From: Lytechinus pictus
Taxonomy: Eukaryota
NCBI RefSeq assembly: GCF_037042905.1
Contig: NC_087252.1
Coordinates: 21,948,001-22,012,000, forward strand
Reading direction: 5' to 3'
DNA: 64,000 nucleotides
The translations under genes were made by a program, and so were the position numbers. Shown in pieces: positions 1 to 64,000 of this stretch. Under the pieces are notes generated by a model that saw only the letters and a program-made list of their open reading frames with translations, searched no databases and was not told the origin of the DNA. Within the stretch, counting starts at the first letter, position 1. The number at the start of each line of letters is the position of its first letter.

Positions 1-557
1 TTCACGAAATGCCAAACGATGCAACCCGAAGTGTTGTTGAAGTCTATGACGAAGTCGGGAATCGTCGAAAAACCGAACCAGAAAAGGATCGATGCAACCC
101 ATACGGAAATATTCGCGTAGATCGCCTTTCGCTTGCTCCTGGTGGTGAAATGCCCGATGGGATCGTAGGTTGCTCGGTGTCTATCGATGCAGATGGTGAC
201 GATGATCAGATTTGATACAAACTGGACGCTGCTGAAGACACCGTAGAAGATCCGGCACGAGTTGTTACCCGGGAATGGGAATCGTCTAAAATAGGTGTGC
301 AAGGATGTCACGATAATGACAAACCCAAAGAGAAAGTCCGAGATTGTAAGGTTTATAATGAAGTAGTTGTTGTAGCCACGGAGTCGTTTCTCGACCGCAA
401 AGGCGGCCAGGCTGAGGCCATTGGTCGTGATGATGAGGGCCACTAGAAGCAGCGGTAGGAGTAGGGCGTGGAGACCTCGTCTCTCATCATCCGTTCCCGT
501 CGCTACTGTTTCGTGTTGCTCCTGAAAAACATCGGTCGTATTCCCGTCCCCGTACAT
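1..557 (-). CDS. GPCR A, exon 1 (partial; class A orphan receptor, TM1-ECL2), closest paralog of gene F
   Basis: Manual translation from ATG at 557: MYGDGNTTDVFQEQHETVATGTDDERRGLHALLLPLLLVALIITTNGLSLAAFAVEKRLRGYNNYFIINLTISDFLFG...SCRIFYGVFSSVQFVSNLIIVTICIDRHRATYDP...; open to the window edge, so absent from the ORF track. Confidence 0.93.
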   Translation of the reverse strand, partial: MYGDGNTTDVFQEQHETVATGTDDERRGLHALLLPLLLVALIITTNGLSLAAFAVEKRLRGYNNYFIINLTISDFLFGFVIIVTSLHTYFRRFPFPGNNSCRIFYGVFSSVQFVSNLIIVTICIDRHRATYDPIGHFTTRSKRKAIYANISVWVASILFWFGFSTIPDFVIDFNNTSGCIVWHFV

Positions 558-2713: not shown

Positions 2714-3016
2714 CTAGCGACGACAATACCGGATAGGGTGGCAGAGCAAACCAAATACGGTTTTCCTAAAGAGCGGTTGGGAGATGACGTAACAGATCGG
2801 ATTGAGTAGACCGTTCACATAAACGAGCCAAATAGATCCCCAATAAGCCCAGAAGGGTAGCTGCGGATAGGCGAGCGTTGGATCGATAGTGATGACGATC
2901 GATATCACAGTCATGGGGAACCACGTGATGAAGAAGGCCATGGCGATGAAGAGTAGGGTCTTGGTTGCCCTGCGAACCTCAGAGGACGACTCGCGAATAG
3001 CAGCTTTCTGAACTCC
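2714..3016 (-). CDS. GPCR B, exon 2 (TM6-TM7-helix 8)
   Basis: ttttatctAG acceptor, then GVQKAAIRESSSEVRRATKTLLFIAMAFFITWFP...WLVYVNGLLNPICY...YCRR*; 303 nt in frame with exon 1. Confidence 0.95.
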   Translation of the reverse strand, partial: GVQKAAIRESSSEVRRATKTLLFIAMAFFITWFPMTVISIVITIDPTLAYPQLPFWAYWGSIWLVYVNGLLNPICYVISQPLFRKTVFGLLCHPIRYCRR

Positions 3017-3506
3017 CTAGATAAAAGGAACCGATAAATGAACAAACAGGCAGTTGTAAGTGAATAAAATTAATGAAGAACCTCAACAATATATTCAGTC
3101 AAGTACTCAATAAAGTAGACGATAAAAACCAAGTAAATATTTATTTGAATGAAGAAAGAAATCAACATTTTTGGTTAACGTATCGGTTGCGATTTTTCTC
3201 ACCGCCACGCAGAATGAATTCTAGTAAATGTATTGAAAATGTCCGTCGAATGACAATGAATAGCTGTTAGGTCTTTGCCGACATTTGGTGAACCGGAACA
3301 GCAGTTCGTCTAAGTTTCTGAGCTGACGGAAAATTGCAAATATGTCGTTTGTCCAGAGTCCAGGACGAAAATGCCGTTTTGATTCACCACTTTTCGACAA
3401 ATATTTCTTGGTTGCTAATTGTCATGAATGGCATTTGACAATACTAAAAGCGTTCCCCCGTGACAACACCTAAACGGAACAGAGAAGAAAGAACTGTACT
3501 ACTTAC

Positions 3507-4292
3507 AGATATTGTCTTTACTTGAGGGCGCTGTTTATTTTCCTTGACATCACCTTCTGCTAGGCCTTGATCTGACACTGTGGTGTCTTTTGTAAACTCC
3601 TTGTCGATGTGCTTTCCACCGGCGATCCCTTGAATCTTTACGAAGATCCGTATGTAGAGAATCAACGTTATGGTGAAAGGGATGATGAAGCGGATCAGTA
3701 CAGTCGACAATTGGGCGATTGGGAACACAGAATACCAGTGAAAACACCTTGAACCAAGGCGAAACTGTAGGAAATAGTCAGGAACCGTCGTGAATGAAAA
3801 CCAGAAAACAAGAGAAACGATCCACACGCAGATGTTGGTGTAGAGCGCCGTTCGCTTTCTCCGTCGTGTGAAATGTCCGATGGGATCGTAGGTTGCCCGG
3901 TGTCTGTCAACGCAGATGGTGACGATGATCAGGTTAGATACGAATTGGATGCTGTTGCTGACACCGTAGAACACCTTGCACCTAACCGGAAAGGGAAAGG
4001 GAAGACGCCCAAGGTACATGTGTAAGCATGTAATGACGAGAAAAAACCCGAAGATAAAGTCCGAGAGAGTGAGGTTTATGATGAAGTAGTTGTTGTAGCC
4101 ACGCAGCCGTTTCTCGACGACAAAGGCGGCCAGGCTGATACCATTGATCGCAATCATAATGATCACGAAAACCAGGAGTAACAACGGGATCCATCGATTT
4201 ATATCAGGCTCTGTACCTACTTCTGTAAGTTCTGTACCTGCTATTTCTGTATATTCTTGAAGTAACTCAGTTGTATTGCCTTCAGCGTACAT
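3507..4292 (-). CDS. GPCR B, exon 1 (TM1-TM5 + ICL3, 262 codons)
   Basis: ORF 3444..4292 with NLxxSD (TM2), C3.25, DRH, W4.50, RFIIP (TM5); GTAAGT donor at 3506 after ...VKTIS, phase 0. Confidence 0.95.
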
Positions 4293-13229: not shown

Positions 13230-14180
13230 GGCTGTCGGTTTAGTTTGAGAAAGCATCATAATACACTCACATGCTATCCTGCCTCTCTTCAATAAAGTAG
13301 CAAGCTCTCTTAATAATAGTTCCCATACGATAGGAATGTTCTTAGATTTCTCTAAAGCATTCGATACGATAAACCACGGAATTATTTTATATAAACTGTC
13401 ACATTATGGTTTCAGAAATAATGATTTAGATTGGTACCGTAATTATTTACATGAACACCAACAACATGTCTGCATTAACAGTAATATGTCACAACTGAGA
13501 ATTCTGACTGCAGTGTTCCTCAGGAATCCATACTTGGCCCGCTGCTTTTTTATACTTTATATCAAGTATTTTAGCAGATCCTCGGATTTATTTTCATTTA
13601 CTTTGTATGCAGATGACACCAATCTTTTTTTTTTTACACAAACATCGAACTCTTTGTCAGGTGTCAATTCCGAATTAAATTCCTTGGCAACATGGTTAAG
13701 GCCGACAAATTATCCCTTAATCTAGAAACCAATTTCATGTTATTTAGTAATACATTAATCGAATTCTAATAGATAACATACAAATACAGCAGGTAACTAC
13801 CACAAAGTTTTGAGGTATATTCATTGAGGACAAACTTTCATTGTCAAAACATCACATTGACAATTGGTGTTATAAACAAACTCAAATGGATATTCCCCCG
13901 AATATTCTTAAATCATTATGTTCAACGTTAGCCCTACCCCCACTTAAATTACGGAATACTATTACTAGCATTGGGAAATAGTGCGATATATACGTTAAAT
14001 AAATTGTCACTGTTACAAAAAAAAAATATGCAGATTATAAGTCAGGTTAATCTAAGACTCGGATTTATTTTCATTTACTATGTATGCAGATGACACCAAT
14101 TTTTTTTTTACAAAAACATCGAACTCTTTGTCAGGTAGTCAATTCCGAATTAAATTCCGTGGCAACATGGTTAAGGCCGA
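13230..14180 (+). mobile_element. 5'-truncated CR1/L2-group LINE relic (reverse transcriptase)
   Basis: [23 protein letters not shown] and LYADDTN RT motifs, many frameshifts. Confidence 0.88.
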
Positions 14181-15683: not shown

Positions 15684-16466
15684 ATGTACGGGGACGGGAA
15701 TACGACCGACGTTCTTCAGGAGCAAGGAACAGTAGCCACGGAAACGGGTGATGAGACACGAGGTCCCCACGCCCTACTCCTACCCCTGCTCCTAGTGGCC
15801 CTCATCATCACGACCAATGGCCTCAGCCTGGCAGCATTCGCCGTCGAGAAACGCCTCCGCGGCCACAACAACTACTTCATCATAAACCTTGCTATCTCGG
15901 ATTTTCTCTTCGGGATCGTCCTGATTATCCCCTGCATACACACTTATCTTGGTCATTTTCCACTCCCCGGTGATGACTGGTGCAGAGTTTTTAACGGCGT
16001 CAGCAGAAGTGTCGAATTCGTATCTAATCTGATCATCGTCACCATCTGCATCGATAGACACCGAGCGACCTACAATCCCATCGGGCATTTCACCACTAGG
16101 AGCAAACGAAAGGCGATCTACGCTAACATCGCCGTGTGGGTTGCTTCGCTTCTTTTCTGGTTCTCGTTCTCGACAATTCCTGAGTTCATTCTTGGGTACA
16201 CCGGCAGTTCAAGTTGTTTACCATGGTATGCGAAAAACCCAACCATTAATTTTGTGACCATCTGCATCCGGTTCATCGTGCCTTTCACCATCATCCTAGT
16301 CCTCTACATACGGATCTTCGTCAAGATTCAGCAGACGACGGGTCGGAAGCACATCCGCAAGGAGTTCGTTGCCAGCATTAGCCAGTCAGGACAGGGGGAA
16401 TCGGAGCAGGAAGGCGAGGAGGATGGAAATGACATGGAACAGCGCCCTCAAGTTACCAAGGAGAAG
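15684..16466 (+). CDS. GPCR C, exon 1 (261 codons)
   Basis: ATG of MYGDGNTT at 15684 inside ORF 15645..16523; same 5-TM motifs; AAG|GTAAT donor at 16467. Confidence 0.95.
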
Positions 16467-23113: not shown

Positions 23114-23416
23114 GGAGGTCAGAAAGTTGCCAAGCGAGAATCGGCCTCTGAAGTTCGCAGCGCCACCAAAACGCTTCTCTTCGTCGCCATAGCTTTATTC
23201 ATCACGTGGTCACCAATGTGCATCGTCACGATAGCCTACTCGATCGACCCGGCTTTCGTCAATCCGCGGCTCCTGGGCTGGTTATACCTGGTACCGTTGT
23301 GGCTGGTCTACGTGAATAGTCTACTCAATCCGCTTTGCTACGTTGTCTCGCAGCCGCTCTTTCGAAAAACCGTATTTGGTTTGATTTCCAACCCTATCCG
23401 GTATTGTCGTGGTTAA
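23114..23416 (+). CDS. GPCR C, exon 2 (TM6-TM7)
   Basis: ttttctctatAG acceptor; GGQKVAKRESASEVRSATKTLLF...FITWSP...NSLLNPLCY...YCRG*; 303 nt; intron 6647 bp. Confidence 0.93.
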   Translation, partial: GGQKVAKRESASEVRSATKTLLFVAIALFITWSPMCIVTIAYSIDPAFVNPRLLGWLYLVPLWLVYVNSLLNPLCYVVSQPLFRKTVFGLISNPIRYCRG

Positions 23417-27565: not shown

Positions 27566-28550
27566 CAGAGTGAGTCAGAAAAAATGTCCCACTTTTGTAA
27601 AGTTGAATTGTTTAAAATATGAATATTTAATCATTAGTTTCATGATATGTCTTGATAGAGGTATCCTCCCAGTACATTCAGGTACCTTTTTCATTTGATC
27701 CCCTGCACGCATGACTGAACAGCGGACAATCTTTAGAAGACTGTCAGACCTCACTTGCGCCAAGTTACAGGGTGGGGAATAAAACACTCTTTTGAACAAA
27801 GATAGTCCGACAGACTGAAACACACACACACACACCCACACTCACACGTACACACACACAAACACACCGACAAGGCCGACCCAAACTGTAACTTTCTGTC
27901 GTGAATTCTTCTTCTCGTACGAAAAGTTGAGTGGCCGCTGTCCTCTTGGGGAGTACTGGCGGATGTTGTGCGTGTTGAGCGAACTGTTCAGCGAAAAACA
28001 GGCTTCATCACCGATGACAAGATCTTCAACAAAGCGAGGACGTCTTTGCAGTAGCCAGTTCGAAAATTGCCAGGAGCTCATGCCTACGTATCATCTGGTA
28101 CGGGTGATATCGTACATCAAGCCGGGCGATACGGTTGAAGGTGCTCTGGGTCAGCTGAAGCCCGTTCCTCCGGGACGAGATCCGTTGGTTGTTGTGTCGA
28201 ACGTGCCCCAACACCTGCCGAACTGCTTCGATGTTGGGCTGACTCCTTGCTGTTCTGCGACGACCTGAATGCCCTGAGTTGAGGTTGGTACTCGTTCCTG
28301 TTCGGTGATATTTCTGAACATTCCGGAGAACAGTCTTTCTGCTGGGACACCAAACATCTGGGTAACGGCGGCGAAACCCTTGCAAAACAACTGCTACACT
28401 CTGAGTCCTTGCATACTCGGTGACCATAAATGACCTATGTTGTGGTGTGAATTGAGGACGAACCATGATTCGTGTACTTTTGCTACTGTAAAAAGAGGCT
28501 CAAGTGACTGCTGCCAAATCAGGCAAGCCCTTTTATAGGCAAGTGCAACA
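27566..28550 (-). mobile_element. Decayed Tc1/mariner-superfamily transposon (DUF4817-type HTH + start of DDD/E domain)
   Basis: ORF 28026..28466 (FRRRYPD..PSRKT..KYHRTGT..SGRRRTARS..YHPYQ) frameshifts into 27842..28081 (LVIGDEACFSLNSSLNTHNIRQY...KVTVWVGL); TA|CAGAGTGAGTCAGAAAAAATGTCCCAC terminus at 27564-27592; truncated by (CA)n; other end not found. Confidence 0.85.
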
Positions 28551-35301: not shown

Positions 35302-36078
35302 ATGTACGGGGACGGGAATACGACCGACGTTCTTCAGGAGCAAGAAACAGCGACGGAAACGGATGAGAGACGAGGTATCCACGCCCTACTCCTACCGCTG
35401 CTCCTAGTGGCCCTCATCATCACGACCAATGGTCTCAGCCTGGCAGCATTCGCTGTCGAGAAACGACTCCGTGGCTACAACAACTACTTCATCATAAACC
35501 TTGCAATCTCGGATTTTCTCTTCGGGATCGTCCTGATTATCCCCTGCATACACACTTATCTTGGTCATTTTCCACTCCCCGGTGATGACTGGTGCAGCGT
35601 TTTTAACGGCGTCAACAGCAGTGTCGAATTCGTATCTATTCTGATCATCGTCACCATCTGCATCGATAGACACCGAGCGACCTACAATCCCATCGGGCAT
35701 TTCACCACAAGGAGCAAGCGAAAGGCGATCTACGCTAACATCGCCGTGTGGGTTGCTTCGCTCCTTTTTTGGTTCTCGTTCTCGACAATTCCTGAGTTCA
35801 TTCTTGGGTACACCAGTAGTTCAGCTTGTTTACCATGGTATGCGAAAAACCCGACCATTCATTTTGTGACGATCTGCATGCGGTTCACCGTGCCTTTCAC
35901 CATCATCCTAGTCCTCTACATACGGATCTTCGTCAAGATTCAGCAGACGGCGGGTCGGAAGCACATCCACAAGGAGTTTGTTGCCAGCATCAGCCAGTCA
36001 GGACAGGGGAAATCGGAGCAGGAAGGCGAGGAGGATGGAAATGACATGGAACAGCGCCCTCAAGTTACCAAGGAGAAA
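35302..36078 (+). CDS. GPCR D, exon 1 (259 codons), tandem duplicate of C
   Basis: ATG at 35302 in ORF 35293..36231; AAA|GTAAGT donor at 36079. Confidence 0.95.
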
Positions 36079-42038: not shown

Positions 42039-42341
42039 GGAGGTCAGAAAGTTGCCAAGCGAGAATCGGCCTCTGAAGTTCGCAGCGCCACCAAAACGCT
42101 TCTCTTCGTCGCCATAGCTTTCTTCATCACGTGGTCACCAATGTCCATCGTCACGATAGCCTACTCGATCGACCCGGCTTTATTCAATCCGCGGCTCCCG
42201 GACTGGTTACACCTGGTACCGTTGTGGCTGGTCTACGTGAATGGTCTACTCAATCCGCTTTGCTACGTTGTCTCGCAGCCGCTCTTTCGAAAAACCGTAT
42301 TTGGTTTGATTTCCCACCCTATCCGCTATTGTCGTGGTTAA
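42039..42341 (+). CDS. GPCR D, exon 2
   Basis: Same acceptor as C; 303 nt; FITWSP and NPLCY motifs; intron 5960 bp. Confidence 0.93.
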   Translation, partial: GGQKVAKRESASEVRSATKTLLFVAIAFFITWSPMSIVTIAYSIDPALFNPRLPDWLHLVPLWLVYVNGLLNPLCYVVSQPLFRKTVFGLISHPIRYCRG

Positions 42342-46017: not shown

Positions 46018-46165
46018 NNNNNNNNNNNNNNNNNNNNNNNNNNNNNNNNNNNNNNNNNNNNNNNNNNNNNNNNNNNNNNNNNNNNNNNNNNNNNNNNNNN
46101 NNNNNNNNNNNNNNNNNNNNNNNNNNNNNNNNNNNNNNNNNNNNNNNNNNNNNNNNNNNNNNNNN
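46018..46165. other. Assembly gap (148 N)
   Basis: Run of N. Confidence 1.
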
Positions 46166-48345: not shown

Positions 48346-50752
48346 GAAACTACTTTCGGAAATCCCGCTCATTAAACTTATAATCTGCAAATTATTAACT
48401 CTCCTCCCCCTTTATTAAACTTATAATCTGCAAATTATTAACTCTCCTCCCCCTTTATTAAACTTTTAAAATGATAATTAATGCTTTATATCGAACATAA
48501 TGTAAAAAACCCCATCATTTATCAAGTCTCCGCTACATAAAACCATTCGTAACTTGAGCTATTTATACAAAACAGTAGCACAAATAATTAATACATGAAG
48601 GAACTCGGGCAGGACCGTCGCTATAGGGGGTGGGGTGCGACATCCCCTCCCCCACTACTCTGGATATCGTCGGTAATTCTGCGCTACCGTCAGAAAAAAA
48701 TGAAAGGGGCAAAAAGAAAAAAAAAAGGAAAATGGAAAGAGGAGAAAGAAAAGAAAAAGAAAGTAAGAAAGAACAAAATAAGGAAGAAAGAAATGAAGAA
48801 AAAGGGAAGAGAGAGAGAGAGAAAGAAAGAGGAAAACAAAATAAAAGGAAAACAACATGAAAGAGAAAACCAGATAGAGAAGGGGCGGGGTAGACGAGGT
48901 TTTGAATAGGTCCGTCCGCCCTGCTTGTAGGTGTAACTAAAAATGCGGATCGTGAGATGTTGGAAAAAGGATTTACTGTCTGTCACCCAAGCGCAGGTCT
49001 GTTGGACTGATTGATGTCTGTCGGAAAAGTGACGAACTGTCGGCACAACAATTTGTCATTTTCCCGACAGACGTCTTTTTTACACATTTTTCACAAATTA
49101 TTTTACTCCTTGCTCTGGAATTTCATGACAAAAAAAATTGTCACATGCAACATACTCTGCCCACTCTTTTTTTTAAGGGGAGGGGGTCATCACGCTAATA
49201 ACGATCTCTGTGATCACGCTATTCCCGCGTAGAGCTTCGCGCTAACGCACACGAACAATCACGAAAAATTATGTTCACACTGCTTCACATCATATGACCG
49301 GGAAATTTGGCTCTTGAACCCCCACCGGTCACCGACGCCTACTACGTCCCTGTTACGCTCTACTACTGAGCCATCACACCGATTATGTTTTACTAATCTA
49401 AACAATACATCATTGTTCTATAAATTATAAAGGCAATTATTCATTTTCTATGACATGATTTGAACGCATAAATCAGTTCAAACTCAAGGTCTTCGTATAA
49501 AATTGAGAAACTCTGATTGTGTGTTCATAATATTACTTTGTACAAATGTATGCCTCAACGAAATCTAGATAAAGATCAATCAATTCTAAACGGAGAAACT
49601 AAATCGTTCTGAAAGCATCAATAGCAAATGATTGCCTCTTTCCCCACAATCTTTAAAAGGCCGCACCACTATTAATTTTAAAGATGTTTTATAGATCTTT
49701 TATTGAATATAAAAGAGATGATTCAGAATTAAGCCGTATTCAATTGGGTGATATTGATTATATTCTTTACAATTTAAAGTTTGTTTTCTTCGGAAAATAT
49801 CAAGAGACTATTCTCAACCTTCATGTATGATACACTTAGCCTACTTGAAGATTAGTGTTGACAATGTAAAATGAGGTTGTCCTAGGTTTTTATAAAGCGA
49901 AATAATATCCTTATAAAACATTAGAAATCAATATTTTTTTCAAAAAGTAGAAACCGACGGTCAACGAAATGCCTTACTATATCATTTTCCCTATTCATTG
50001 GGAGATCGATTTTTCGCTTGGCCAAAGAACACGCTATAGGGACGGTAACACAAATATTTGTGATCAATTTCAAATAGCAAAAACGATGTTCATAGTTTGA
50101 TAATCATCATAATGGGTATGTTGATCATTATACTATTTTGACCGTTTTCTCGTTTCGGCATTTGTTAAATTCTTTTTTTATATTGATTGTAAATATTTGT
50201 GTAAACGGTGCCCGAAACAAATTTTATTAGATATAATGCTCAATTGTTAAGATTCTTTTTCGGTTCTAAAACTACATTAATTCATTCCTGTCATCCCAAT
50301 CTCCCTTTCTCTCCCTCTCTCTTCCTCTCATTCTTCTCTTATCCTCCTCCCCCACTCTTTCTTTTTCTATCTCTTCAAGATTTGCCAATGAGGGTTCATC
50401 GCTCTTATCATCAAATCAATAGATTTAGTTTTATTATATTTTCAATAAGTGCTTTAGATTAAATGAATTTTTGAATTATGACGATACTAAATGCACTTAG
50501 TTAAAATATAATGCAAAACCTTTATAAGTTGAAAAAAAATAATATTGCCTCTCACGCGAATGGGGCGTGTAATTGGCGCGACTGCAAATATACATATATT
50601 TAGTCATGGGTTAAATAGAGTTGTGCAGCATTTGGGAAATTAGATCAGACCAAAGTGGCCAGAGACCTATAAGGGTATCTTACAAACGTCTCTAGAAGAG
50701 TTTTTTTTTTACCAGGAAGTGTACTTGTCAGATCACAGAGCCATCATCGACC

Positions 50753-51538
50753 ATGGACGCTGAAGGCAATACAACTGAGTTACTTCAAGAACAAACAGAA
50801 ATAGCAGGTACAGAACTTACAGAAGTAGGTACAGAGCCTGATAGAAATGGGTGGATCCCGTTGTTACTCCTGCTTTTCGTGTTCATTATGATTGCGATCA
50901 ATGGTATCAGCCTGGCCGCCTTTGCCGTCGAGAAACGGCTGCGTGGCTACAACAACTACTTCATCATAAATCTCACTCTCTCGGACTTTATCTTCGGGTT
51001 TTTTCTCGTCATTACATGCTTACACATGTACCTTGGGCGTCTTCCCTTTCCCTTTCCGGTTAGGTGCAAGGTGTTCTACGGTGTCAGCAGCAGCATCCAG
51101 TTCGTATCTAACCTGATCATCGTCACCATCTGCGTTGACAGACACCGGGCAATCTACGATCCCATCGGACATTTCACAAGACGAAGAAAACGAACGGCGC
51201 TTTACACCAACATCTGCGTGTGGATCGTTTCTTTTGTTTTCTGGTTTTCATTCTCGACAGTTCCTGACTTTTTCCTGCAGTTTCGGCTCGGTTCAGAGTG
51301 TTTTCACTGGTATTCTGTGTTCCCAATCGCCCAATTCTCGACCGTACTGATCCGCTTCATCATCCCTTTCACCATAACGTTGATTCTCTACATACGGATC
51401 TTTATAAAGATTCGAAGGATCGCCGGTGGAAGGCACATCGACAAGGAATTTACTGAAGACACCGCAGTGTCAGATCATAGTCTAGCGGAAGATAATTTCA
51501 AGGAAAATAAACAGCGCCCTCAAGTAAATACAATATCT
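50753..51538 (+). CDS. GPCR E, exon 1 (262 codons), inverted-duplicate sister of B
   Basis: ORF 50753..51574; TCT|GTAAGT donor at 51539. Confidence 0.95.
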
Positions 51539-52423
51539 GTAAGTAGCACACTCCTCTCTGTTCCGTTTAGGTGAAGTCACGCGGGAACGATTTCAATAAC
51601 ATAGATGTATTATCAAATGTCATTCATAATGAGCAACCGAGAAATATTTGTCGAAAAATGGTGAATCAAAACGGTCCTGGACTCTGGACAAACGACATAT
51701 TTGCAATTTTCCGTCAGCTCCGAAACTTAGGACGAACTGCTTATCCGGCTCACCAATTGTCGGCAAAGTCCCCCGCAGCTAGTCATTGTCATTCGAGTGG
51801 CATTTTCAATAAATTTATTGTGTTCGAAAATTCTGCGTGGCGGTGAGAAAACTGTTATGTTAACCAAACCAAAGTTGCCTATTAACAATTTGAATTGTCT
51901 TGTTAGTTAAAAATCAGTTCCAATACATTTATAATTATTATATACCTAATGGATACGGAAACTTTATACAAAAATTGGGATAAAACGAGTAACTACGCTA
52001 AAAGCCATGTCTGCATAGTTTGGAAGAGTATATGAATGCCACTTTTATGGACTTATGAGCAATTGGTTCACAAAACATCATGATTTTAACTAAGACCAAA
52101 TGGTTTACTGTGCTTTTACCAACCTTGCGAAAGAAAGACATCACGAAAATTAACGTTGTTGTCTCAAGACAATGCCATCGGCGATAATAGCTAACACATT
52201 CTCATATCTTAGAATTGTTTTCTTCTCTGTTGCGATTCATCTGGACGTATGCCCGGAATGTCGTAGGTGTCACAAAAGTTCATATCTTTCTTCATTCATA
52301 TATATATTTACTTGTTTTTTATCGTTTAATTTATTGAGTAATTGACTATTTTGTTGAGGTGCTTCATTAATTTTGTTCGCTTACAACTGCCTGTTTGTTC
52401 ATTTGTCGGTTCCTTTTCTCTAG

Positions 52424-52726
52424 GGAGTTCAGAAAGCTGCCATTCGTGAGTCAGCCTCTGAGGTTCGAAGCGCCACCAAGACTCTACTCTTCATCGTATT
52501 GGCCTTCTTCATCACGTGGTTGCCAATGTCTCTTATGTCGATTGTCATCACTATCGATCCAACGCTCGGCTATCCGCGGATACCCCTCTGGGCTTATTGG
52601 ATACCTATATGGATCATTTACTTGAACGGTCTACTCAATCCAATTTGTTATGTCATCTCCCAACCGCTCTTTAGGAGAACCGTATTTGGTTTGCTCTGCC
52701 ATCCTATCCGGTATTGTCGTTGCTAG
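52424..52726 (+). CDS. GPCR E, exon 2
   Basis: ttttctctAG acceptor; GVQKAAIRESASEVRSATK...FITWLP...NPICY...YCRC*; 303 nt; intron 885 bp. Confidence 0.95.
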   Translation, partial: GVQKAAIRESASEVRSATKTLLFIVLAFFITWLPMSLMSIVITIDPTLGYPRIPLWAYWIPIWIIYLNGLLNPICYVISQPLFRRTVFGLLCHPIRYCRC

Positions 52727-54309
52727 GATAATTACCCCCACCCGCCTTCACCATTACACAGATACAGAACCACCGTTTATTACAAAACGTAGTTTCAAAA
52801 TCTATTGTAGAACATTTTGGACTGTATAATTAAACACACGTTCTGTTAAGATAAAAGATGTGAATATGAACACGAAATCACTGTTTGTCATCGAGTTCTA
52901 TGGCGAATTAATGCCCCGACACTTTGATTTGTTGTACGATGTTAATAAGTCTAGTAATCATTCAGGTATATGTTTGGTGACAAAATAGAATTGGTGTTAT
53001 GTGGTAACATAAACAAGAGATTATTATCCTTGTGCTTACTCGCGCAGGCGCACTATAGCCCGTTTTTTTAAGGCAATCTTAACTTGTAGAACATGTCAAA
53101 ATTCGGTTTACATTGCATGTTTCTTTCGTTTACAGCGGTCTATTGTCTTACCTTTATTCGCCATTCCCAGAGAGTTTTAAATGGTTTGAATGTCGAATGT
53201 ACTTATGAAATGAACCTGTAATGTTAGAGATTGGTGTCACAATTGGCTATCCATAGTTAAACCACAAAATTAGGCCAGAGTTGTAAAGTAAACACGGGTT
53301 CAGAATATGGTTCCTAGTCTCTTTCTCACTCTCTCACACACATATTACAATGTTTCTTTCTTTATTTTACCATCACTATCGTCATCATCGTCGTCGTCAT
53401 CACCATCATCACCATCATCATAATCAAAAGCATCAACACGACCGTGACATATTTTATGGTCTATTTTTCGCTAAATTTATTCTGCAGCGTGGTCAAAGAC
53501 AAAGGATATTGAGAAAGATAAAAATCTTGGGGTGCAATATCATTAAAATTGATAAAGTATGTCATAACCTTTTCTGTTTCTAGGGTAAGTTGTTACGAAA
53601 GCGTAGTTGTGTCCTTAAATGGCAAAAATGATTTCAGTTACCCAACACCTGATGTCCTAGCAATACTTTGCTTTGCTAAAAATAAATTCCTTCTTAGATC
53701 GACCTACAGGTAATTGCCGTTTCTCTTTTTACATTCTCCTAGGAAAATATAACATCTTTAAGGTGTAAATAGAAGCACTTTCTCGCGTAGGCCAACGTCT
53801 TTGTAAGAACAGTTGGAAAAAAATAAATATCCCTAATAAAAACTAAATTATTTTTTTCAAAGGCGAAAAATGAATTAATCAGGGACTCGTCGATATCGCT
53901 GCCGTACAGGTACGGGGGCATCGGGGCGCTGGCCCCATAAGTTTTACGATCAAGAAAAAAAAAGGAGGGGGAAAGGAAGGGGAAAGAAATGGTGAAATGT
54001 GCTATTCTATTTCAACATGATCAATACCGCGTCAACATCTATCAAAATTAAGAATTCTCAATATTCTTATGAGTTATGAACCATTGATTCAGGGGTGGAA
54101 CCTGGATATTCCAAAGGGGGGGGGGGGGGGCATTGAAAAAAAAAGGTTTTCACCAATACCTCTATTAACCAACAGATCGATATATAGTTACACAACCCCT
54201 TCTCTCCAACCGTTTTATACAGAAAGCTTCTACTTAATATCCTACAATGAAATAGTACATTTCGTCATTGATTCTTTTGATCCTAACTATCTATTGAAAA
54301 AGTGATATG

Positions 54310-54375
54310 CATATCAAAGGACACTAGCTTGTATGATATTCCTTCCAAGGTAAACTGCCTCGTATATAAGTCAAA
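54310..54375 (+). promoter_or_regulatory. Candidate core promoter block (ATCAAAG + TATATAA) shared by genes F, D and A
   Basis: TATATAA at 54363, 35184 and 741-747(-), 115-190 bp before the ATG; deleted in C. Confidence 0.35.
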
Positions 54376-54536
54376 GCATTTTAGTATCGAAGTACTACCT
54401 TGCGTGACAGTCAGCAAGATCATGTAACCCTATCTGGATTGGGTTTAATACGAATCTAACGGTAGTACGTTTTCCTTCATGTAACGATTATAGTGCCACT
54501 GGTAAAATTATAATTTCCAGCTTCGTAGTGAGAGTC

Positions 54537-55316
54537 ATGTACGGGGACGGGAATACGACCGACGTTGTTCAGGAGCAACAAGAAACAGTAGCGACGGGAA
54601 CGGATGATGAGAAACGAGGTCTCCATGCCCTACTCCTACCTCTGCTCCTAGTGGCCCTCATCATCACGACCAATGGTCTCAGCCTGGCCGCCTTTGCCGT
54701 CGAGAAACGACTCCGTGGCTACAACAATTACTTCATCATAAACCTTACAATCTCGGACTTTCTCTTCGGGTTTGTCATCATCGTGACATCCTTGCACACC
54801 TATTTTAGACGATTCCCATTCCCGGGTAACAACTCGTGCCGGATCTTCTACGGTGTTGTCAGCAGCGTCCAGTTTGTATCAAATCTGATCATCATCACTA
54901 TCTGCATTGATAGACACCGAGCAACCTACGATCCCATCGGGCATTTCACCACCAGGAGCAAGCGAAAGGGGATCTACGCGAATATTTCCGTGTGGGTTGC
55001 ATCAATCCTTTTCTGGTTCGGATTTTCGACGATTCCCGACTTCGTCATGGACTTCAACAACACGTCCAGTTGCTTCGTTTGGCATTCCGTGAACGCGATC
55101 GGCCAGATAGTACCAGTATTCATCCGGTTCATCATCCCTTTCACAATCATGCTGATAATCTATGTGCGGATCTTCGTGAAGATCCAAAAGATAGCCGGTA
55201 GAAAGCACATCGGCGAAGAATTTAATGGGGACACTTCATGGTCGCGGCAGAGCAAATCGGACGGCGGCGACGACGCTGATGATTCCAAAGAGGGTCCCAT
55301 CACTACCATAGAATCT
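54537..55316 (+). CDS. GPCR F, exon 1 (260 codons)
   Basis: ATG at 54537 in ORF 54528..55331; TCT|GTGAGT donor at 55317. Confidence 0.95.
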
Positions 55317-55959
55317 GTGAGTATTCATTAACTCCATATCAAAGCCCGTAGTCGGGGGGGGGGGGTTGTTCAGGGGTTCGAGCGAGCCCCTAACTTGAAA
55401 ATTTTCAAAAGCAAGAAAAATATGGGGAGGAAAAGGAAAGGAAGTGAAAGGGGTCGAACCCCAAATTTGAGAACCGTGCGTGACTACAGGCTTGCATACT
55501 CCTTCATAATTCCATTCCTTTTTTATTCATAAGGGAGTGCACAGCCCTGTGTTTGGATACGGTACGTCAGGAGACAATGCAATTCCAAGAACATAGTCAT
55601 CCTGCATAGGCAAAAATCAATCGCATTCCATCTCCATGTTTTTCACGACACCATACAAAAAGTTGGTTCCATAAAAAGGAAGAAGAGGTCGACTTGATAA
55701 AAAAACGAGTGACTTATACGCGCACTTCGATCGAGAGTTTTCAATGTCTTGAAAGCAATCCCGGCATATGGTACACTCCTTTTCTCGTTCAGAAGACTGG
55801 CCTCTTGGGAAAAAATGTAAGTCAAGGCCCTACCTGGTCTGCTTCGGAAAATGACAGAGATCGTAAACACAGATTCAGGGATGTGGGCCATAATGAGGCA
55901 ATGGATTGAATAAAGAGAGCATTACGTATCCATTATTGTCATAAAAGTTAATTCATGTA

Positions 55960-56220
55960 GAGGTGTGGCGCCCCAGTGGATAAGTCTCCTTGACTTTGAA
56001 CCAAAAGGTCTAGGATTCCAATCTCAGCGCAGCATCAATCTACATCCAGGTGTAGTAAATGGGTAGACCTACCTGGTTGGAAGAAATTCCTTGAATGCTC
56101 GAGCGTCTGATCAGGGTACCCATACTAGTTCCGGGGTAATTGTATGCAGCGCTTAGCAACATTGCATTAAGAGCTACATAAATGTTCCATATCTTTATCA
56201 TCATTTTTATTATTATTAAT
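55960..56220 (+). mobile_element. Decayed tRNA-SINE with L2-like tail in the gene F intron
   Basis: tRNA-like head (tggcgccccagtggataag...gattccaatc), 'ccaggtgtagtaaatgggta' central segment, 'aagagctacataaatg...tattattatt' tail. Confidence 0.6.
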
Positions 56221-56361
56221 TAATTCTTTATTCTGGTGATGCACACAATCAGTTACTACGTACATGTATAAACCAATGTTGTAACGTCCCGTATGTAAGC
56301 TGACATCATACATATGAAATTCATGACTTTTATTTTTATCCATGAATCTTTTCCCAATTAG

Positions 56362-56667
56362 GGTGGTCAGAAAGCAGTCAAGCGTGAATCAACATCCGAG
56401 GTTCGCAGCGCCACAAAGACACTCCTCTTCATCGTCATCGCTTTCTTTATTACCTGGTCTCCAGTTTCTGTCATCTCCTTCATCTACTCGATTGAACCGA
56501 CACTCATCTATCCACGGCTTCCTGACTGGGCGCTTTTGGTACCCGGTTGGCTGGTCTACGTGAATAGCCTACTCAATCCGCTTTGCTACGTTGTCTCGCA
56601 GCCGCTGTTCCGGAAAACCGTGTTCGGTTTGATCCGCCACCCTATCCAATATTGCAGAGGGAAATAA
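56362..56667 (+). CDS. GPCR F, exon 2 (not in ORF track)
   Basis: tcttttcccaattAG acceptor; manual translation GGQKAVKRESTSEVRSATKTLLFIVIAFFITWSPVSVISFIYSIEPTLIYPRLPDWALLVPGWLVYVNSLLNPLCYVVSQPLFRKTVFGLIRHPIQYCRGK*. Confidence 0.94.
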   Translation, partial: GGQKAVKRESTSEVRSATKTLLFIVIAFFITWSPVSVISFIYSIEPTLIYPRLPDWALLVPGWLVYVNSLLNPLCYVVSQPLFRKTVFGLIRHPIQYCRGK

Positions 56668-56689
56668 TCGTCGGTTTCATGTGATTGTT

Positions 56690-57610
56690 TTATTTATTTA
56701 TTTGTTAAAATATCTTTATACAGGATAACAAGCTCAGATTGACTGTTTTTCAGCATGGTCCTGTTGACATAAAATAACAAAGATAAAAGTGTAACTTAGG
56801 TTCTGTACAAGTAATGAATGAATTAAATGACATTTAAAATCAGAATTTATCACTAACACAAAAGTTGTTCAAAGATAACATTAATTTTTTTTCTCGAATT
56901 GATGAAATGAGAAGTATTATCATGTAGACAATACAATAACAGTAAAATATAAACTAAGATGTATGATATCATTGACATAGTAAATAAAAAAATCAACAAA
57001 ATTTATGAAGGAAATTAGGAATCTAATTATTATTGAGCATATCATATTAGACTTAAGTAGAAAATTTTACAAAATAAATATCACCAAGCAAAGTAATGGA
57101 AGCGTATTTGCTAAGAGTACGAATTATATTATATAAATACCATTCGTTCTAACATTGGATAACACAAATCATTAACACAATCAAAAAGAGAAATATAGAG
57201 TAAGATGGAACAAAAAAAAAGCATCTAGTACTAATTATTGAAATTAAACTTCTTATAAATCAATTTAAATGTTTCGACAGTTTGTGCATTTTGGATATTA
57301 TTGGGTATGTCATTCCATCGTTTGGCACCGGAAAATCTTAAAGTAAGGAAAATTGAAGGTGAACAACGGGTGCAACTACGTTAAGGCTATCATTAGTTCT
57401 TGTATGGTAATTATGTCGGTCACAGACCATTTCAATGTCATTAAAAAGTGGGGGATTGGCTAATCCATGTATGCATTTAAACATTTGTGTGGCAAGAGAG
57501 CATTCTTTTCGTTCATCAATATTAGTCCAGGTAAGATTTTTACAGGTGTTTTAAGAGAAATGTTTTGATCAAAGTTATGTAACGTGCGGCCCTTTTTTGT
57601 AATCTACAAA
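56690..57610 (-). mobile_element. LINE 3' fragment downstream of gene F
   Basis: Minus-strand peptides VCDRHNYHTRTN and RFSGAKRWNDIPNNIQNAQTVETFK; (AAAT)n tail at ~56690. Confidence 0.65.
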
Positions 57611-61769: not shown

Positions 61770-64000
61770 CAAGATGGCGTCCAAGATGGCCGCCATTCAC
61801 TGAAAATGGATACAAATGACACATTATCCACCATATAATCCTAATTCGGTTCATATTCCATGGTCTGGGGGTAAAAAAATTGATTTAGGCTAGAATGAAT
61901 TATAAGCCCTCCAGTGTACCAGGCAAATCTAAGATGGCGCCCAAAATGGCTGCCGTAGGCTGAAAATCCACAATTCATCTAAATTTGTTTTTATTCAATG
62001 GTTTTAAGGGTGAAATAGTACATTGAAACAAGTTACAAGGACAGCCAGTGGTCTGGTGTGTCCAAGAATCCAAGATGGCTTCCAAGAATGGAGTTTAAAA
62101 TGGCTGTTGATAATTAAAATGGACATAGTTCATTTCATATCCGCCTGGGACATAATGATTTTGGTGTCTAGACCATGATTTCAATGGTCAAATAAGACAT
62201 TGGGACAAGTTACAAGGACAGTCAGTGGTGCAGTATGTTAACAAATCAAAGATGGCTTCCAAAAATGGAGTCGAAAATTGCTGTTGCTACTTAAAAAAAA
62301 CCCGACATAGTTTGCTCAATGTCCAGAAATATGATTTTTGTGTCTATACCATGGTTAAAATGTCTACTGTCTACCAGACAGTATTTTCTTTGATAATTTC
62401 GTTCTTAATAATGTTTCCACTACCAAATTCTTGGGTGTCCTTATCGACAACAAATTATCCTGGAAGCCTCATATCGATAGTATATGTAAAACAATTTCTA
62501 GAAACATTGGAATTATTAATAAACTCAAACATTTTCTCCCTTCTCGAACTTTGTTAACATTATACTACACACTTATTCTACCATATATTAATTACGGAAT
62601 AATTGCCTGGGGATGTGCAATACAAACACAACTAAATAGAATATTACTTCTCCAGAAAAAAGCTCTAAGAATAATTTTTCAAACACACTCTAGATCACAT
62701 ACTGATATCTTATTTTTTGAAAATAACAGCCTCAAAGTAAGTGACATATATCTCTTCGAAGTAAGTCAATTTATGTTCAAATTAAGCAAGGACGATCTCC
62801 CCACTATTTTCTCAAATATGTTCCATAAAAATGCATCCGTACACTGTTACCCAACAAGGCAACGACAATATTATCATCTCCCATTAACAAGAACTCTTTT
62901 TGCAAAGAATTCATTTGTCTTTTCCGGGCCTGCCTACTGGAACTCTCTGCCTCAAGATTTTAAAGAATCCCCTAATATAAATATTTTTAAACACAAACTG
63001 AAAAAAATTTTAATTTTGCAATACTCGTTGCAAGCAGATCATGCTGAATAACTGATTTATTCATACTCGGTTTTTGTGTTTTTTGTATTATATGCGCTCA
63101 TATTACATACATATACATGTATATTATTTGTTATTACTGTTTTCTTCTTAAAATTGCAACTAGCCAAAGTACCTGCTCCTGCTGCCCGCTTTCTTTCTAT
63201 GTTATGTACCCTGCACTTCTCTGTCCCTCCCCTCTTCTCCCCCTCACATTCCCCCTCTCTCCCTAATGCTATAAAACAAAATATTTCTCACATCAGTTAC
63301 TCTTTTTTTCGTAAAATGCACCAAAATTGTATTTATTGATACAATTCTATATATCATTACGACCCAGTGGTTTTTTTGTTGTTGTAATGAATCTAAGTTT
63401 ATTTAGGGGCTTGCCTTTTGTACAAGCTTTGCTTTTTTTCGGCAAGACCCTCCGTTTTACTTTAAAATACAATTGTCATACTAGGTAATTTTATTTATTG
63501 AATTGTGTTCCTTAAATCTAAGATTATGTTATATATATCTTATTACGTCTTGCATTATTTTCGACCTTGTTTTGTTATACTTATCATGTTGTGAAACGGA
63601 AATCAATAAATCAAATCAAATCAAATCAAATCAAATCAAATAATACATTGGGATAAGTTACAAGGAAAGTCAGTGGTCTGGTATGTGCAAAAATCCCCGA
63701 TGGATTTCAAAAATTGATTCTGAAATGGCTGCTAATACTTAAAGCGGACAAAGCTCATTTCATTTTGACCTGGGATATGTGATTTTCATGTCTAAACCAC
63801 TGGTTTCAAGGGTCAAATAATATATTAGGATAAGTTACAAGGAAAGTCAAAAATCGAAGATGGCGTCCAAAATTGATCTTAAAAATATGCTGCTGATACT
63901 TAAAGCGGACAAAGCTCATTTCATATCGGCCTGGGAAATGTGATTTTTGTGTCTAAACCACTGGTTTGAGGGCCAAAATAATACATTAGGACAGATTTTA
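61770..64000. repeat. Degenerate ~180-190-bp tandem array rich in CAAGATGGC motifs (probably the subterminal array of a DNA transposon), interrupted by a LINE
   Basis: Recurring 'acattgggacaagttacaagga..gtcagtgg...caagatggc.tccaa'. Confidence 0.7.
62362..63640 (+). mobile_element. Younger 5'-truncated CR1/L2-group LINE 3' end with (TCAAA)n tail
   Basis: Open 206-aa ORF GVLIDNKLSWKPHI...LILPYINYG..AWG...LQKKALR...HCYPTR...WNSLP; tail aataaatcaaatcaaatcaaa at 63605-63640. Confidence 0.9.

Follow-up and report, generated by a model that had tools for sequence, protein, structure and literature searches.

Replacements at ligand-pocket positions 3.32 and 3.33 in a tandem array of sea urchin orphan GPCRs probably reflect ordinary paralogue divergence under purifying selection

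The pairing of W7.40 with Y7.43 is an aminergic signature among class A GPCRs, and several described systems invite comparison with the genes treated here. The DREADD hM3Dq is the human muscarinic M3 receptor carrying Y3.33C and A5.46G (PMC11096383), an engineered protein in which Asp3.32 is kept, and it offers experimental precedent for the control of ligand selectivity by 3.33 and 5.46. The teleost clade III TAARs recognise amines in a non-classical manner, with Asp5.42 in place of Asp3.32 (PMC4695389). In sea urchins, lineage-specific expansions known as “surreal-GPCRs” were described for S. purpuratus and are outlined in the summary given in PMC7042368, and an omega below 1 was reported for echinoderm OR-like genes in the same source (PMC7042368).

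The window considered here, namely the whole stretch of 64,000 nucleotides of Lytechinus pictus DNA that was analysed (C8, 21948001-22012000), carries six two-exon class A GPCR genes, designated A to F (Table 1). All six match PF00001 (7tm_1) above the gathering score, with E values from 3e-19 to 2.7e-27, and each is interrupted in ICL3 by a phase-0 GT..AG intron. They belong to an array whose 14 intact copies are spread over some 130 kb of C8 (21.89-22.02 Mb), the majority of them lying beyond the window. On the minus strand the gene order is B1 A1 B2 A2 B3 A3 B4 A B, nine copies in which B-type and A-type alternate; C D E F G come next, on the plus strand. With the loci outside the window included (L031-L042), the array extends over G000:C8:21879634-22022358 and takes in a C-type fragment of 74 residues at C8 21879634-21879855 beside the 14 intact copies. 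Canonical GT..AG introns and intact ORFs were found in all 14, and RefSeq proteins are identical to 12 of the 14 gene models. Copy A2 (C8 21918180-21919896, beyond the window) bears a 39-residue in-frame deletion by which TM4 to ECL2 is lost, is represented in RefSeq by a protein of 322 residues and is probably non-functional; in L. variegatus, a frameshifted A-type copy lies at L046:14498-15248.

Table 1. Positions of the receptor genes and of their TM3 and TM5 features, counted from the first letter of the window; P numbers denote the RefSeq proteins to which the gene models are identical
Feature	Position	Strand	Remarks
Gene A, exon 1	1..557	-	start codon at 557; exon leaves the window at the left edge; full model P0076
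Gene A, TM3 motif GVFSSVQ	242-222	-	F3.32 TTC 236-234
Gene B	2717..4292	-	exon 1 4292-3507, GT..AG intron, exon 2 3016-2717; P0082
Gene B, TM3 motif GVSNSIQ	3965-3945	-	R5.46 3692-3690
Gene C, exon 1 (N-terminus to ICL3)	15684..16466	+	PF00001 E 7.6e-27; P0071
Gene C, TM3 motif GVSRSVE	15996-16016	+	S3.32 AGC 16002-16004, R3.33 AGA 16005-16007, E3.36 GAA 16014-16016
Gene C, R5.46 CGG	16269-16271	+	
Gene C, exon 2 (TM6, ECL3, TM7, helix 8)	23114..23413	+	downstream of a 6.6 kb GT..AG intron
Gene D, exon 1	35302..36078	+	P0070; R5.46 35881-35883
Gene D, TM3 motif GVNSSVE	35608-35628	+	N3.32 AAC, S3.33 AGC, E3.36 GAA
Gene D, exon 2	42039..42338	+	
Gene E (B-type)	50753..52723	+	exon 1 50753-51538, exon 2 52424-52723; P0085
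Gene E, TM3 motif GVSSSIQ	51080-51100	+	S3.33 AGC 51089-51091
Gene F (A-type)	54537..56664	+	exon 1 54537-55316, exon 2 56362-56664; P0077
Gene F, TM3 motif GVVSSVQ	54852-54872	+	V3.32 GTC 54858-54860

Membership of class A is borne out by the PF00001 match and by the core micro-motifs, with DRH standing for D/E-R-Y: Cys3.25 and the ECL2 cysteine are invariant, DRH keeps Arg3.50, T-W-x-P keeps W6.48 and P6.50, and NPxxY is present. The resemblance to muscarinic and other aminergic receptors extends to a short N-terminus, an ICL3 of moderate length and the TM7 stretch W-L-V-Y-V-N-S-L-L-N-P, found in all copies, which supplies W7.40 and Y7.43. The nearest solved relatives are likewise aminergic, comprising by sequence the muscarinic M2-M5, H3, 5-HT2 and beta receptors (E about 1e-25, identity of about 20-22%) and by fold, using an AlphaFold2 model, M5, M2, M4, M3, H3, beta1/2 and 5-HT2A (target-normalised TM-score of 0.8-0.86). 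Unlike aminergic GPCRs, the urchin genes lack Asp3.32 and have DRH for DRY, Arg5.46 for Ser/Ala and a non-aromatic 6.51/6.52 (Met, Val or Thr at 6.51; Ser, Cys or Thr at 6.52), so that neither the aromatic pair nor the small or polar set at 5.42/5.43/5.46 of that class is found. At position 3.32, each of the 20 family members has Ser, Asn, Phe, Val or Ile, and wider echinoid relatives have Arg or Gly; every relative carries DRH and none has Asp3.32. Arg5.46 occurs in 20 of 20 family members and is absent from those wider relatives. Because the defining Asp3.32 is missing, the subfamily is not one of amine receptors despite its RefSeq names, and “muscarinic M4-like”, “TAAR13c-like” and “5-HT1F-like” are automatic names and not ligand assignments. 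In protein searches, members of the subfamily were found in L. pictus, in L. variegatus and as one truncated S. purpuratus protein only, the next relatives being at most 43% identical. On these sequence comparisons, the subfamily appears to consist of echinoid-restricted orphan receptors of aminergic-type descent.

Set beside the known systems, the locus shows both likenesses and departures. As in clade III TAARs, the genes are aminergic-derived and tandem-expanded, the canonical Asp3.32 is lost and a charged pocket residue has moved or changed; unlike those receptors, in which an acidic residue binds amines, the urchin genes have a conserved basic Arg5.46, with an acidic Glu3.36 in C and D only. 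The top solved match, 8e9w (hM3Dq), and 8e9z (hM3R) differ in the alignments at exactly 3.33 and 5.46; the urchin variation is natural, unlike that of hM3Dq, and occurs in orphan receptors. As with the surreal-GPCRs, set here beside groups A-F by description only, the genes form an echinoderm-specific tandem class A cluster that has expanded independently under overall purifying selection, the A-type copies making up a species-specific clade. Unlike the surreal-GPCRs, they have one ICL3 intron and constitute a small subfamily, with 14 copies in L. pictus and fewer found in four L. variegatus stretches.

The six TM3 motifs of A to F that a sequence-only reading of the window had listed proved exact in sequence and in coordinates, and its numbering of 3.32, 3.33, 3.36 and 5.46 is right, as judged from the 25-residue spacing between Cys3.25 and Arg3.50 and from the alignment with muscarinic M3. 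In the phmmer alignment of gene C with that receptor, S107 lies opposite Asp3.32, R108 opposite 3.33, E111 opposite Ser3.36 and R196 opposite 5.46, and in the AlphaFold2 model all four residues of C are helical with a pLDDT of about 90. Judged from homologous structures of muscarinic and further aminergic receptors, 3.32 and 3.33 would line the orthosteric pocket.

The same reading had regarded A/F, B/E and C/D as nearly identical sister pairs, every one of them with a replacement at 3.32 or 3.33, and had taken this as a sign of ligand tuning after duplication. The replacements themselves are real; the sisterhood fails for A/F and B/E, and near-identity is not borne out. At the protein level, C and D are 93.0% identical, A and F 95.0%, and B and E just 87.6%. 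In a codon tree of the 14 L. pictus and six L. variegatus genes, C-D is the sole sister pair among the three (support 100), with LvC1 as the orthologue of C/D, whereas E falls with the L. variegatus B copies, B with B2-B4, and F inside the L. pictus-specific A clade or at its base. The dS values agree: 0.074 for C-D, against 0.150 for A-F and 0.143 for B-E, the latter two being as deep as the distance between L. pictus and L. variegatus orthologues (0.15-0.20). Since just one pair is a sister pair, the argument from “three of three sister pairs” cannot be sustained. It shrinks to the divergence of C from D, together with a single change in E and another in F, because the remaining A-type copies (A1, A2, A3, A and LvA) are all F3.32/S3.33 and the remaining B-type copies (B1-B4 and B of L. 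pictus with three of L. variegatus) are all S3.32/N3.33. Relative to their types, E differs by AAC to AGC at 3.33 and F by TTC to GTC at 3.32. Were the differences placed uniformly along the genes, about one two-codon interval would be expected to be altered in all three pairs, against six overlapping intervals observed; these resolve into four hotspots (alignment columns 13-14, 30, 112-113 and 182), and 3.32/3.33 is therefore just one of several such places.

Even the change in E may not be fixed, given that an earlier-annotation L. pictus protein 97.2% identical to E keeps N3.33; the S3.33 of E may thus be polymorphic. The distance between E and this protein is similar to that between C or D and their closest earlier-annotation proteins. 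It was also observed that N3.33S in E creates a perfect (AGC)3 run in the TM3 codons (window 51080-51094), AGC/AGT serine codons being abundant in the motif region of all copies.

Trees built from different segments of the genes are in conflict. The N-terminus to TM1 of C and D (window 15684-15870 and 35302-35480) groups with the A-type copies and not with the clade of their own TM2-TM5 core, and B-type relationships change between the exon 1 and exon 2 trees, which indicates gene conversion or mosaic evolution inside the array. The TM2-TM5 core tree retains (C,D) with a support of 97.

How unusual the two positions are depends on the background chosen. Along the tree, five amino-acid changes were counted at 3.32 and four at 3.33, the TM mean being 1.3; at least five changes were seen in 11 of the 189 TM columns and at least four in 17, so the two positions lie within the top 6-9% of TM columns by this count. 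Empirical Bayes gives posterior-mean nonsynonymous rates of 0.56 for 3.32 and 0.64 for 3.33 (ranks 21 and 17 of 189; TM mean 0.28), and the M8 posterior mean omega is 0.64 and 0.60, respectively (ranks 14 and 17 of 189; TM mean 0.29). When the synonymous rate is fixed at the average of the gene, the joint estimate of the nonsynonymous rate for the two codons is 0.8 (range 0.3-1.5), and rates of 0.3 (p 0.02), 1.5 (p 0.026) and 2 (p 0.0015) are rejected. The tuning proposal had been staked on the two codons outpacing the TM background. That much they do, the joint rate lying above both the mean (about 0.3, p 0.02) and the median (about 0.2, p 0.001) of the TM columns, but they are ordinary among sites of the extracellular half. 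The mean rate is 0.41 in the extracellular half of the bundle and 0.18 in the intracellular one (Mann-Whitney p 1.8e-12), and positions of the canonical class A pocket are faster than the remaining TM positions (p 2.5e-4). Among the 80 extracellular-half TM sites, 3.33 ranks 16 and 3.32 ranks 20, with 5.39, 6.58, 7.39, 7.35 and others being faster. The two positions are thus among the faster pocket sites and unremarkable for the extracellular half.

The reading preferred here, to which a probability of about 0.65 is given, is that paralogues of a tandem orphan GPCR family have diverged at their pocket sites in the ordinary way, while purifying selection acts on the genes as a whole (gene-wide omega of 0.30 under M0). 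The Asp3.32 counter-ion would have been lost in an aminergic-derived family marked by DRH and a conserved Arg5.46, and 3.32 and 3.33 would no longer hold an invariant anchor role; replacement there may be tolerated because that role is gone. Relative to synonymous change, the two sites evolve at a rate of about 0.8, or roughly threefold that of the average TM position, a pace typical of the pocket-facing extracellular half, which runs at more than twice that of the intracellular half; it is because the rates fit this half that the differences between copies are read as ordinary divergence. Glu3.36 would have arisen once, ahead of the C/D duplication. The changes would probably still make the copies prefer different ligands, the most plausible case being that of C and D, which differ in charge at 3.33.

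That positive selection drove the changes at 3.32/3.33, and Q3.36E on the stem of C and D, toward a new specificity in each copy is unlikely, although it finds some encouragement in the rates just described, which put both codons in the top 6-9% of TM columns and their joint rate above the TM background. The C/D pair speaks for it most directly: codon 3.32 has taken two hits at one nucleotide, 3.33 has undergone a change of charge, the pairwise dN/dS of C-D is 0.49 (0.15 for A-F and about 0.15 for A-type pairs generally, with B-E at 0.42), and the replacements reach further pocket positions (5.39, 6.52 and 7.35) as well as ECL2 and ECL3. The comparison of hM3Dq with hM3R at 3.33 and 5.46 shows, moreover, that 3.33 can set ligand selectivity (PMC11096383). 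Selection as the driver is nonetheless not supported by the codon analyses. These used 20 coding sequences (14 from L. pictus and six from L. variegatus) over 370 codons, aligned without the frameshifted L. variegatus A-type copy and with one L. variegatus B copy represented by exon 1 only. The models were fitted with our own GY94-F3x4 likelihood implementation, which was checked solely by likelihood agreement with IQ-TREE (M0, -7275.9; MG+F3X4+G4 in IQ-TREE, -7268.9) and by its false-positive rate at omega 1.

Both the M7/M8 comparison and the MEME-type site test that the sequence-only reading had proposed were run across paralogues and orthologues and were non-significant at 3.32/3.33, and no test puts omega above 1 there. 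With the 20 sequences, M2a did not improve on M1a (LRT 1.13, p 0.57) nor M8 on M7 (LRT 4.44, p 0.11), the M8 probability of omega above 1 being 0.028 at 3.32 and 0.010 at 3.33. A FEL-like grid gave alpha 2.0, beta 0.8 and p 0.40 at 3.32, alpha 0, beta 0.65 and p 0.21 at 3.33, and purifying selection at 3.36 (p 0.02); the MEME-like p values were 1.0, 0.27 and 0.53 at 3.32, 3.33 and 3.36. Branch-site tests, in which kappa and the branch-length scale were fixed, were non-significant with C and D as foreground (p 0.12), with C, D and their stem (p 0.09, close to the margin) and with C, D, E and F (p 0.49), and the posteriors of omega above 1 at these codons did not exceed 0.14. The copies being mosaics, the site test was run again for the TM2-TM5 core, using a tree of that segment, and gave the same outcome at 3.32/3.33. 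In simulations on the 20-sequence tree, the per-site false-positive rate was 2.3% at omega 1, and omega values of 3 and 5 were detected in 25% and 39% of cases, respectively; with power so low, the null result is weak against episodic selection, and gene conversion also blurs the trees used. Pervasive omega of at least 2 at the two codons is rejected (p 0.0015). The positions are no outliers among extracellular-half TM sites, the nine B-type genes of the two species together show a single change at these codons, as do the six A-type genes, and that of E is probably not fixed.

A further explanation, rather improbable, is that constraint has been relaxed, redundant C, D and E drifting, perhaps to loss of function, with pocket changes that are neutral or slightly deleterious. 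The dN/dS of C-D and of B-E lies above that of A-type pairs, beta at 3.32 and 3.33 jointly is indistinguishable from 1, and decayed copies accompany the array (the deletion in A2, the C-type fragment and the frameshifted L. variegatus gene). Expression was followed by RNA mapping on 50730-56700 (5,971 letters), using reads of three runs (about 6% of each, tissue unlabelled) and contigs of a fourth. Over the exons of E no RNA reads were found in that small share of the three runs, a result that fits drift and does not show silence. F is transcribed and correctly spliced: both exons are covered by contigs, and the spliced joint 55316>56362 (GT..AG) was recovered in one contig of run X1 at a depth of about 5. 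Standing further against relaxation, C, D, E and F keep their ORFs, splice sites and core motifs (Cys3.25, DRH, W6.48-x-P and NPxxY), their dN/dS is well under 1, and 93 of the 370 codons are significantly purifying in the FEL-like analysis. That the TM3 differences were copied from other paralogues by gene conversion and are not lineage point substitutions is scarcely credible, for all that the segment trees conflict, as the codon pairs of C (AGC AGA) and D (AAC AGC) and the GAA at 3.36 occur in no other copy of either species, and the core tree keeps (C,D) with the site results unchanged.

The preferred reading of ordinary divergence leaves the C/D pair as the best lead for real functional divergence, one that is statistically unsupported. 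The two proteins differ at about 25 residues, including 3.26, 3.32, 3.33, 3.40, 5.39, 5.45, 5.48, 6.44, 6.52, 7.35 and 7.46, together with two ECL2 sites and four ECL3 sites, and four of the 25 or so differences are packed into 15 residues of TM3. At codon 3.32 the second base is T in LvC1 and LvC2, G in C and A in D, and at 3.33 a radical Ser/Arg difference brings a change of charge. In exon 1, the codons that differ divide into 17 nonsynonymous and 16 synonymous; in exon 2 (23114-23413 against 42039-42338), 10 codons differ, nine of them nonsynonymously, which alone is not significant. It was further observed that Ile3.40 is found in D alone (region 35626-35643; Asn in the others) and Leu6.44 in C alone (region 23200-23215; Phe in the others). 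As 3.40 and 6.44 are part of the class A P-I-F connector motif, C and D may differ in activation too.

The claim that Glu3.36 was gained in C/D stands, in that codon 3.36 is GAA in C and D alone among the 20 sequences and CAA or CAG in the 18 others, and Glu3.36 recurs in the earlier-annotation proteins nearest C and D. The codons point to one C-to-G change older than the C/D duplication, the direction being read solely from the L. variegatus states. For Glu3.36, one turn below 3.32, the sequence-only reading had proposed a role as substitute counter-ion or as partner of R5.46. On geometric grounds a putative salt bridge of Glu3.36 with Arg5.46 would be plausible; the known TM3-TM5 pair of rhodopsin involves 3.37 with 5.46, not 3.36. 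It is a long shot that the charge of the pocket has been inverted, Asp3.32 being lost and Arg5.46 fixed, in a manner suiting the sensing of anionic small molecules, with a Glu3.36-Arg5.46 ion pair then switching the ligand class in C and D. Were this true, C and D, the former with a second Arg at 3.33, would represent a new geometry of the class A counter-ion that evolved in nature.

The main value of the present analysis is one of correction, since a comparison limited to the window had made ordinary pocket divergence resemble an adaptive signal repeated three times in three, and the resemblance was lost once the array was taken whole, another species was included and codon models were fitted explicitly; with low power, 3.32 and 3.33 do not number among positively selected codons. 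What is left, modest but usable, is an orphan GPCR subfamily, small and cleanly annotated, in which Arg5.46 is conserved and Asp3.32 absent. Its young C/D sisters, differing in charge at 3.33 and sharing a new Glu3.36, constitute a convenient natural pair for de-orphanisation and for swap mutants that probe how ligand class depends on pocket charge in aminergic-derived receptors.

Some minor observations may be added. The codon 7.37 (window 23291-23293) gave a MEME-like p of 0.0012 that was lost after correction for 370 sites. An omega above 1 is consistently supported at one codon alone, which lies nearby at column 323 in ECL3 (window 23276-23278, residue 316 of C), with a FEL-like p of 0.008 and an M8 posterior of 0.96, where V, D, L, Y, F, G and S are found across the family. 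Between the receptor genes lie ORFs that resemble fragments of retrotransposon reverse transcriptase and transposase (window 13336-13725 and 62431-63051 on the plus strand, 28026-28466 on the minus strand), and 46018-46165 is a run of N. Within the RNA-mapped stretch, short intronic or intergenic repeats (window 51674-51715, 53225-53267 and 56079-56114) draw many part-matching RNA reads and high-depth contigs, and look like transcribed dispersed repeats, not receptor transcripts.
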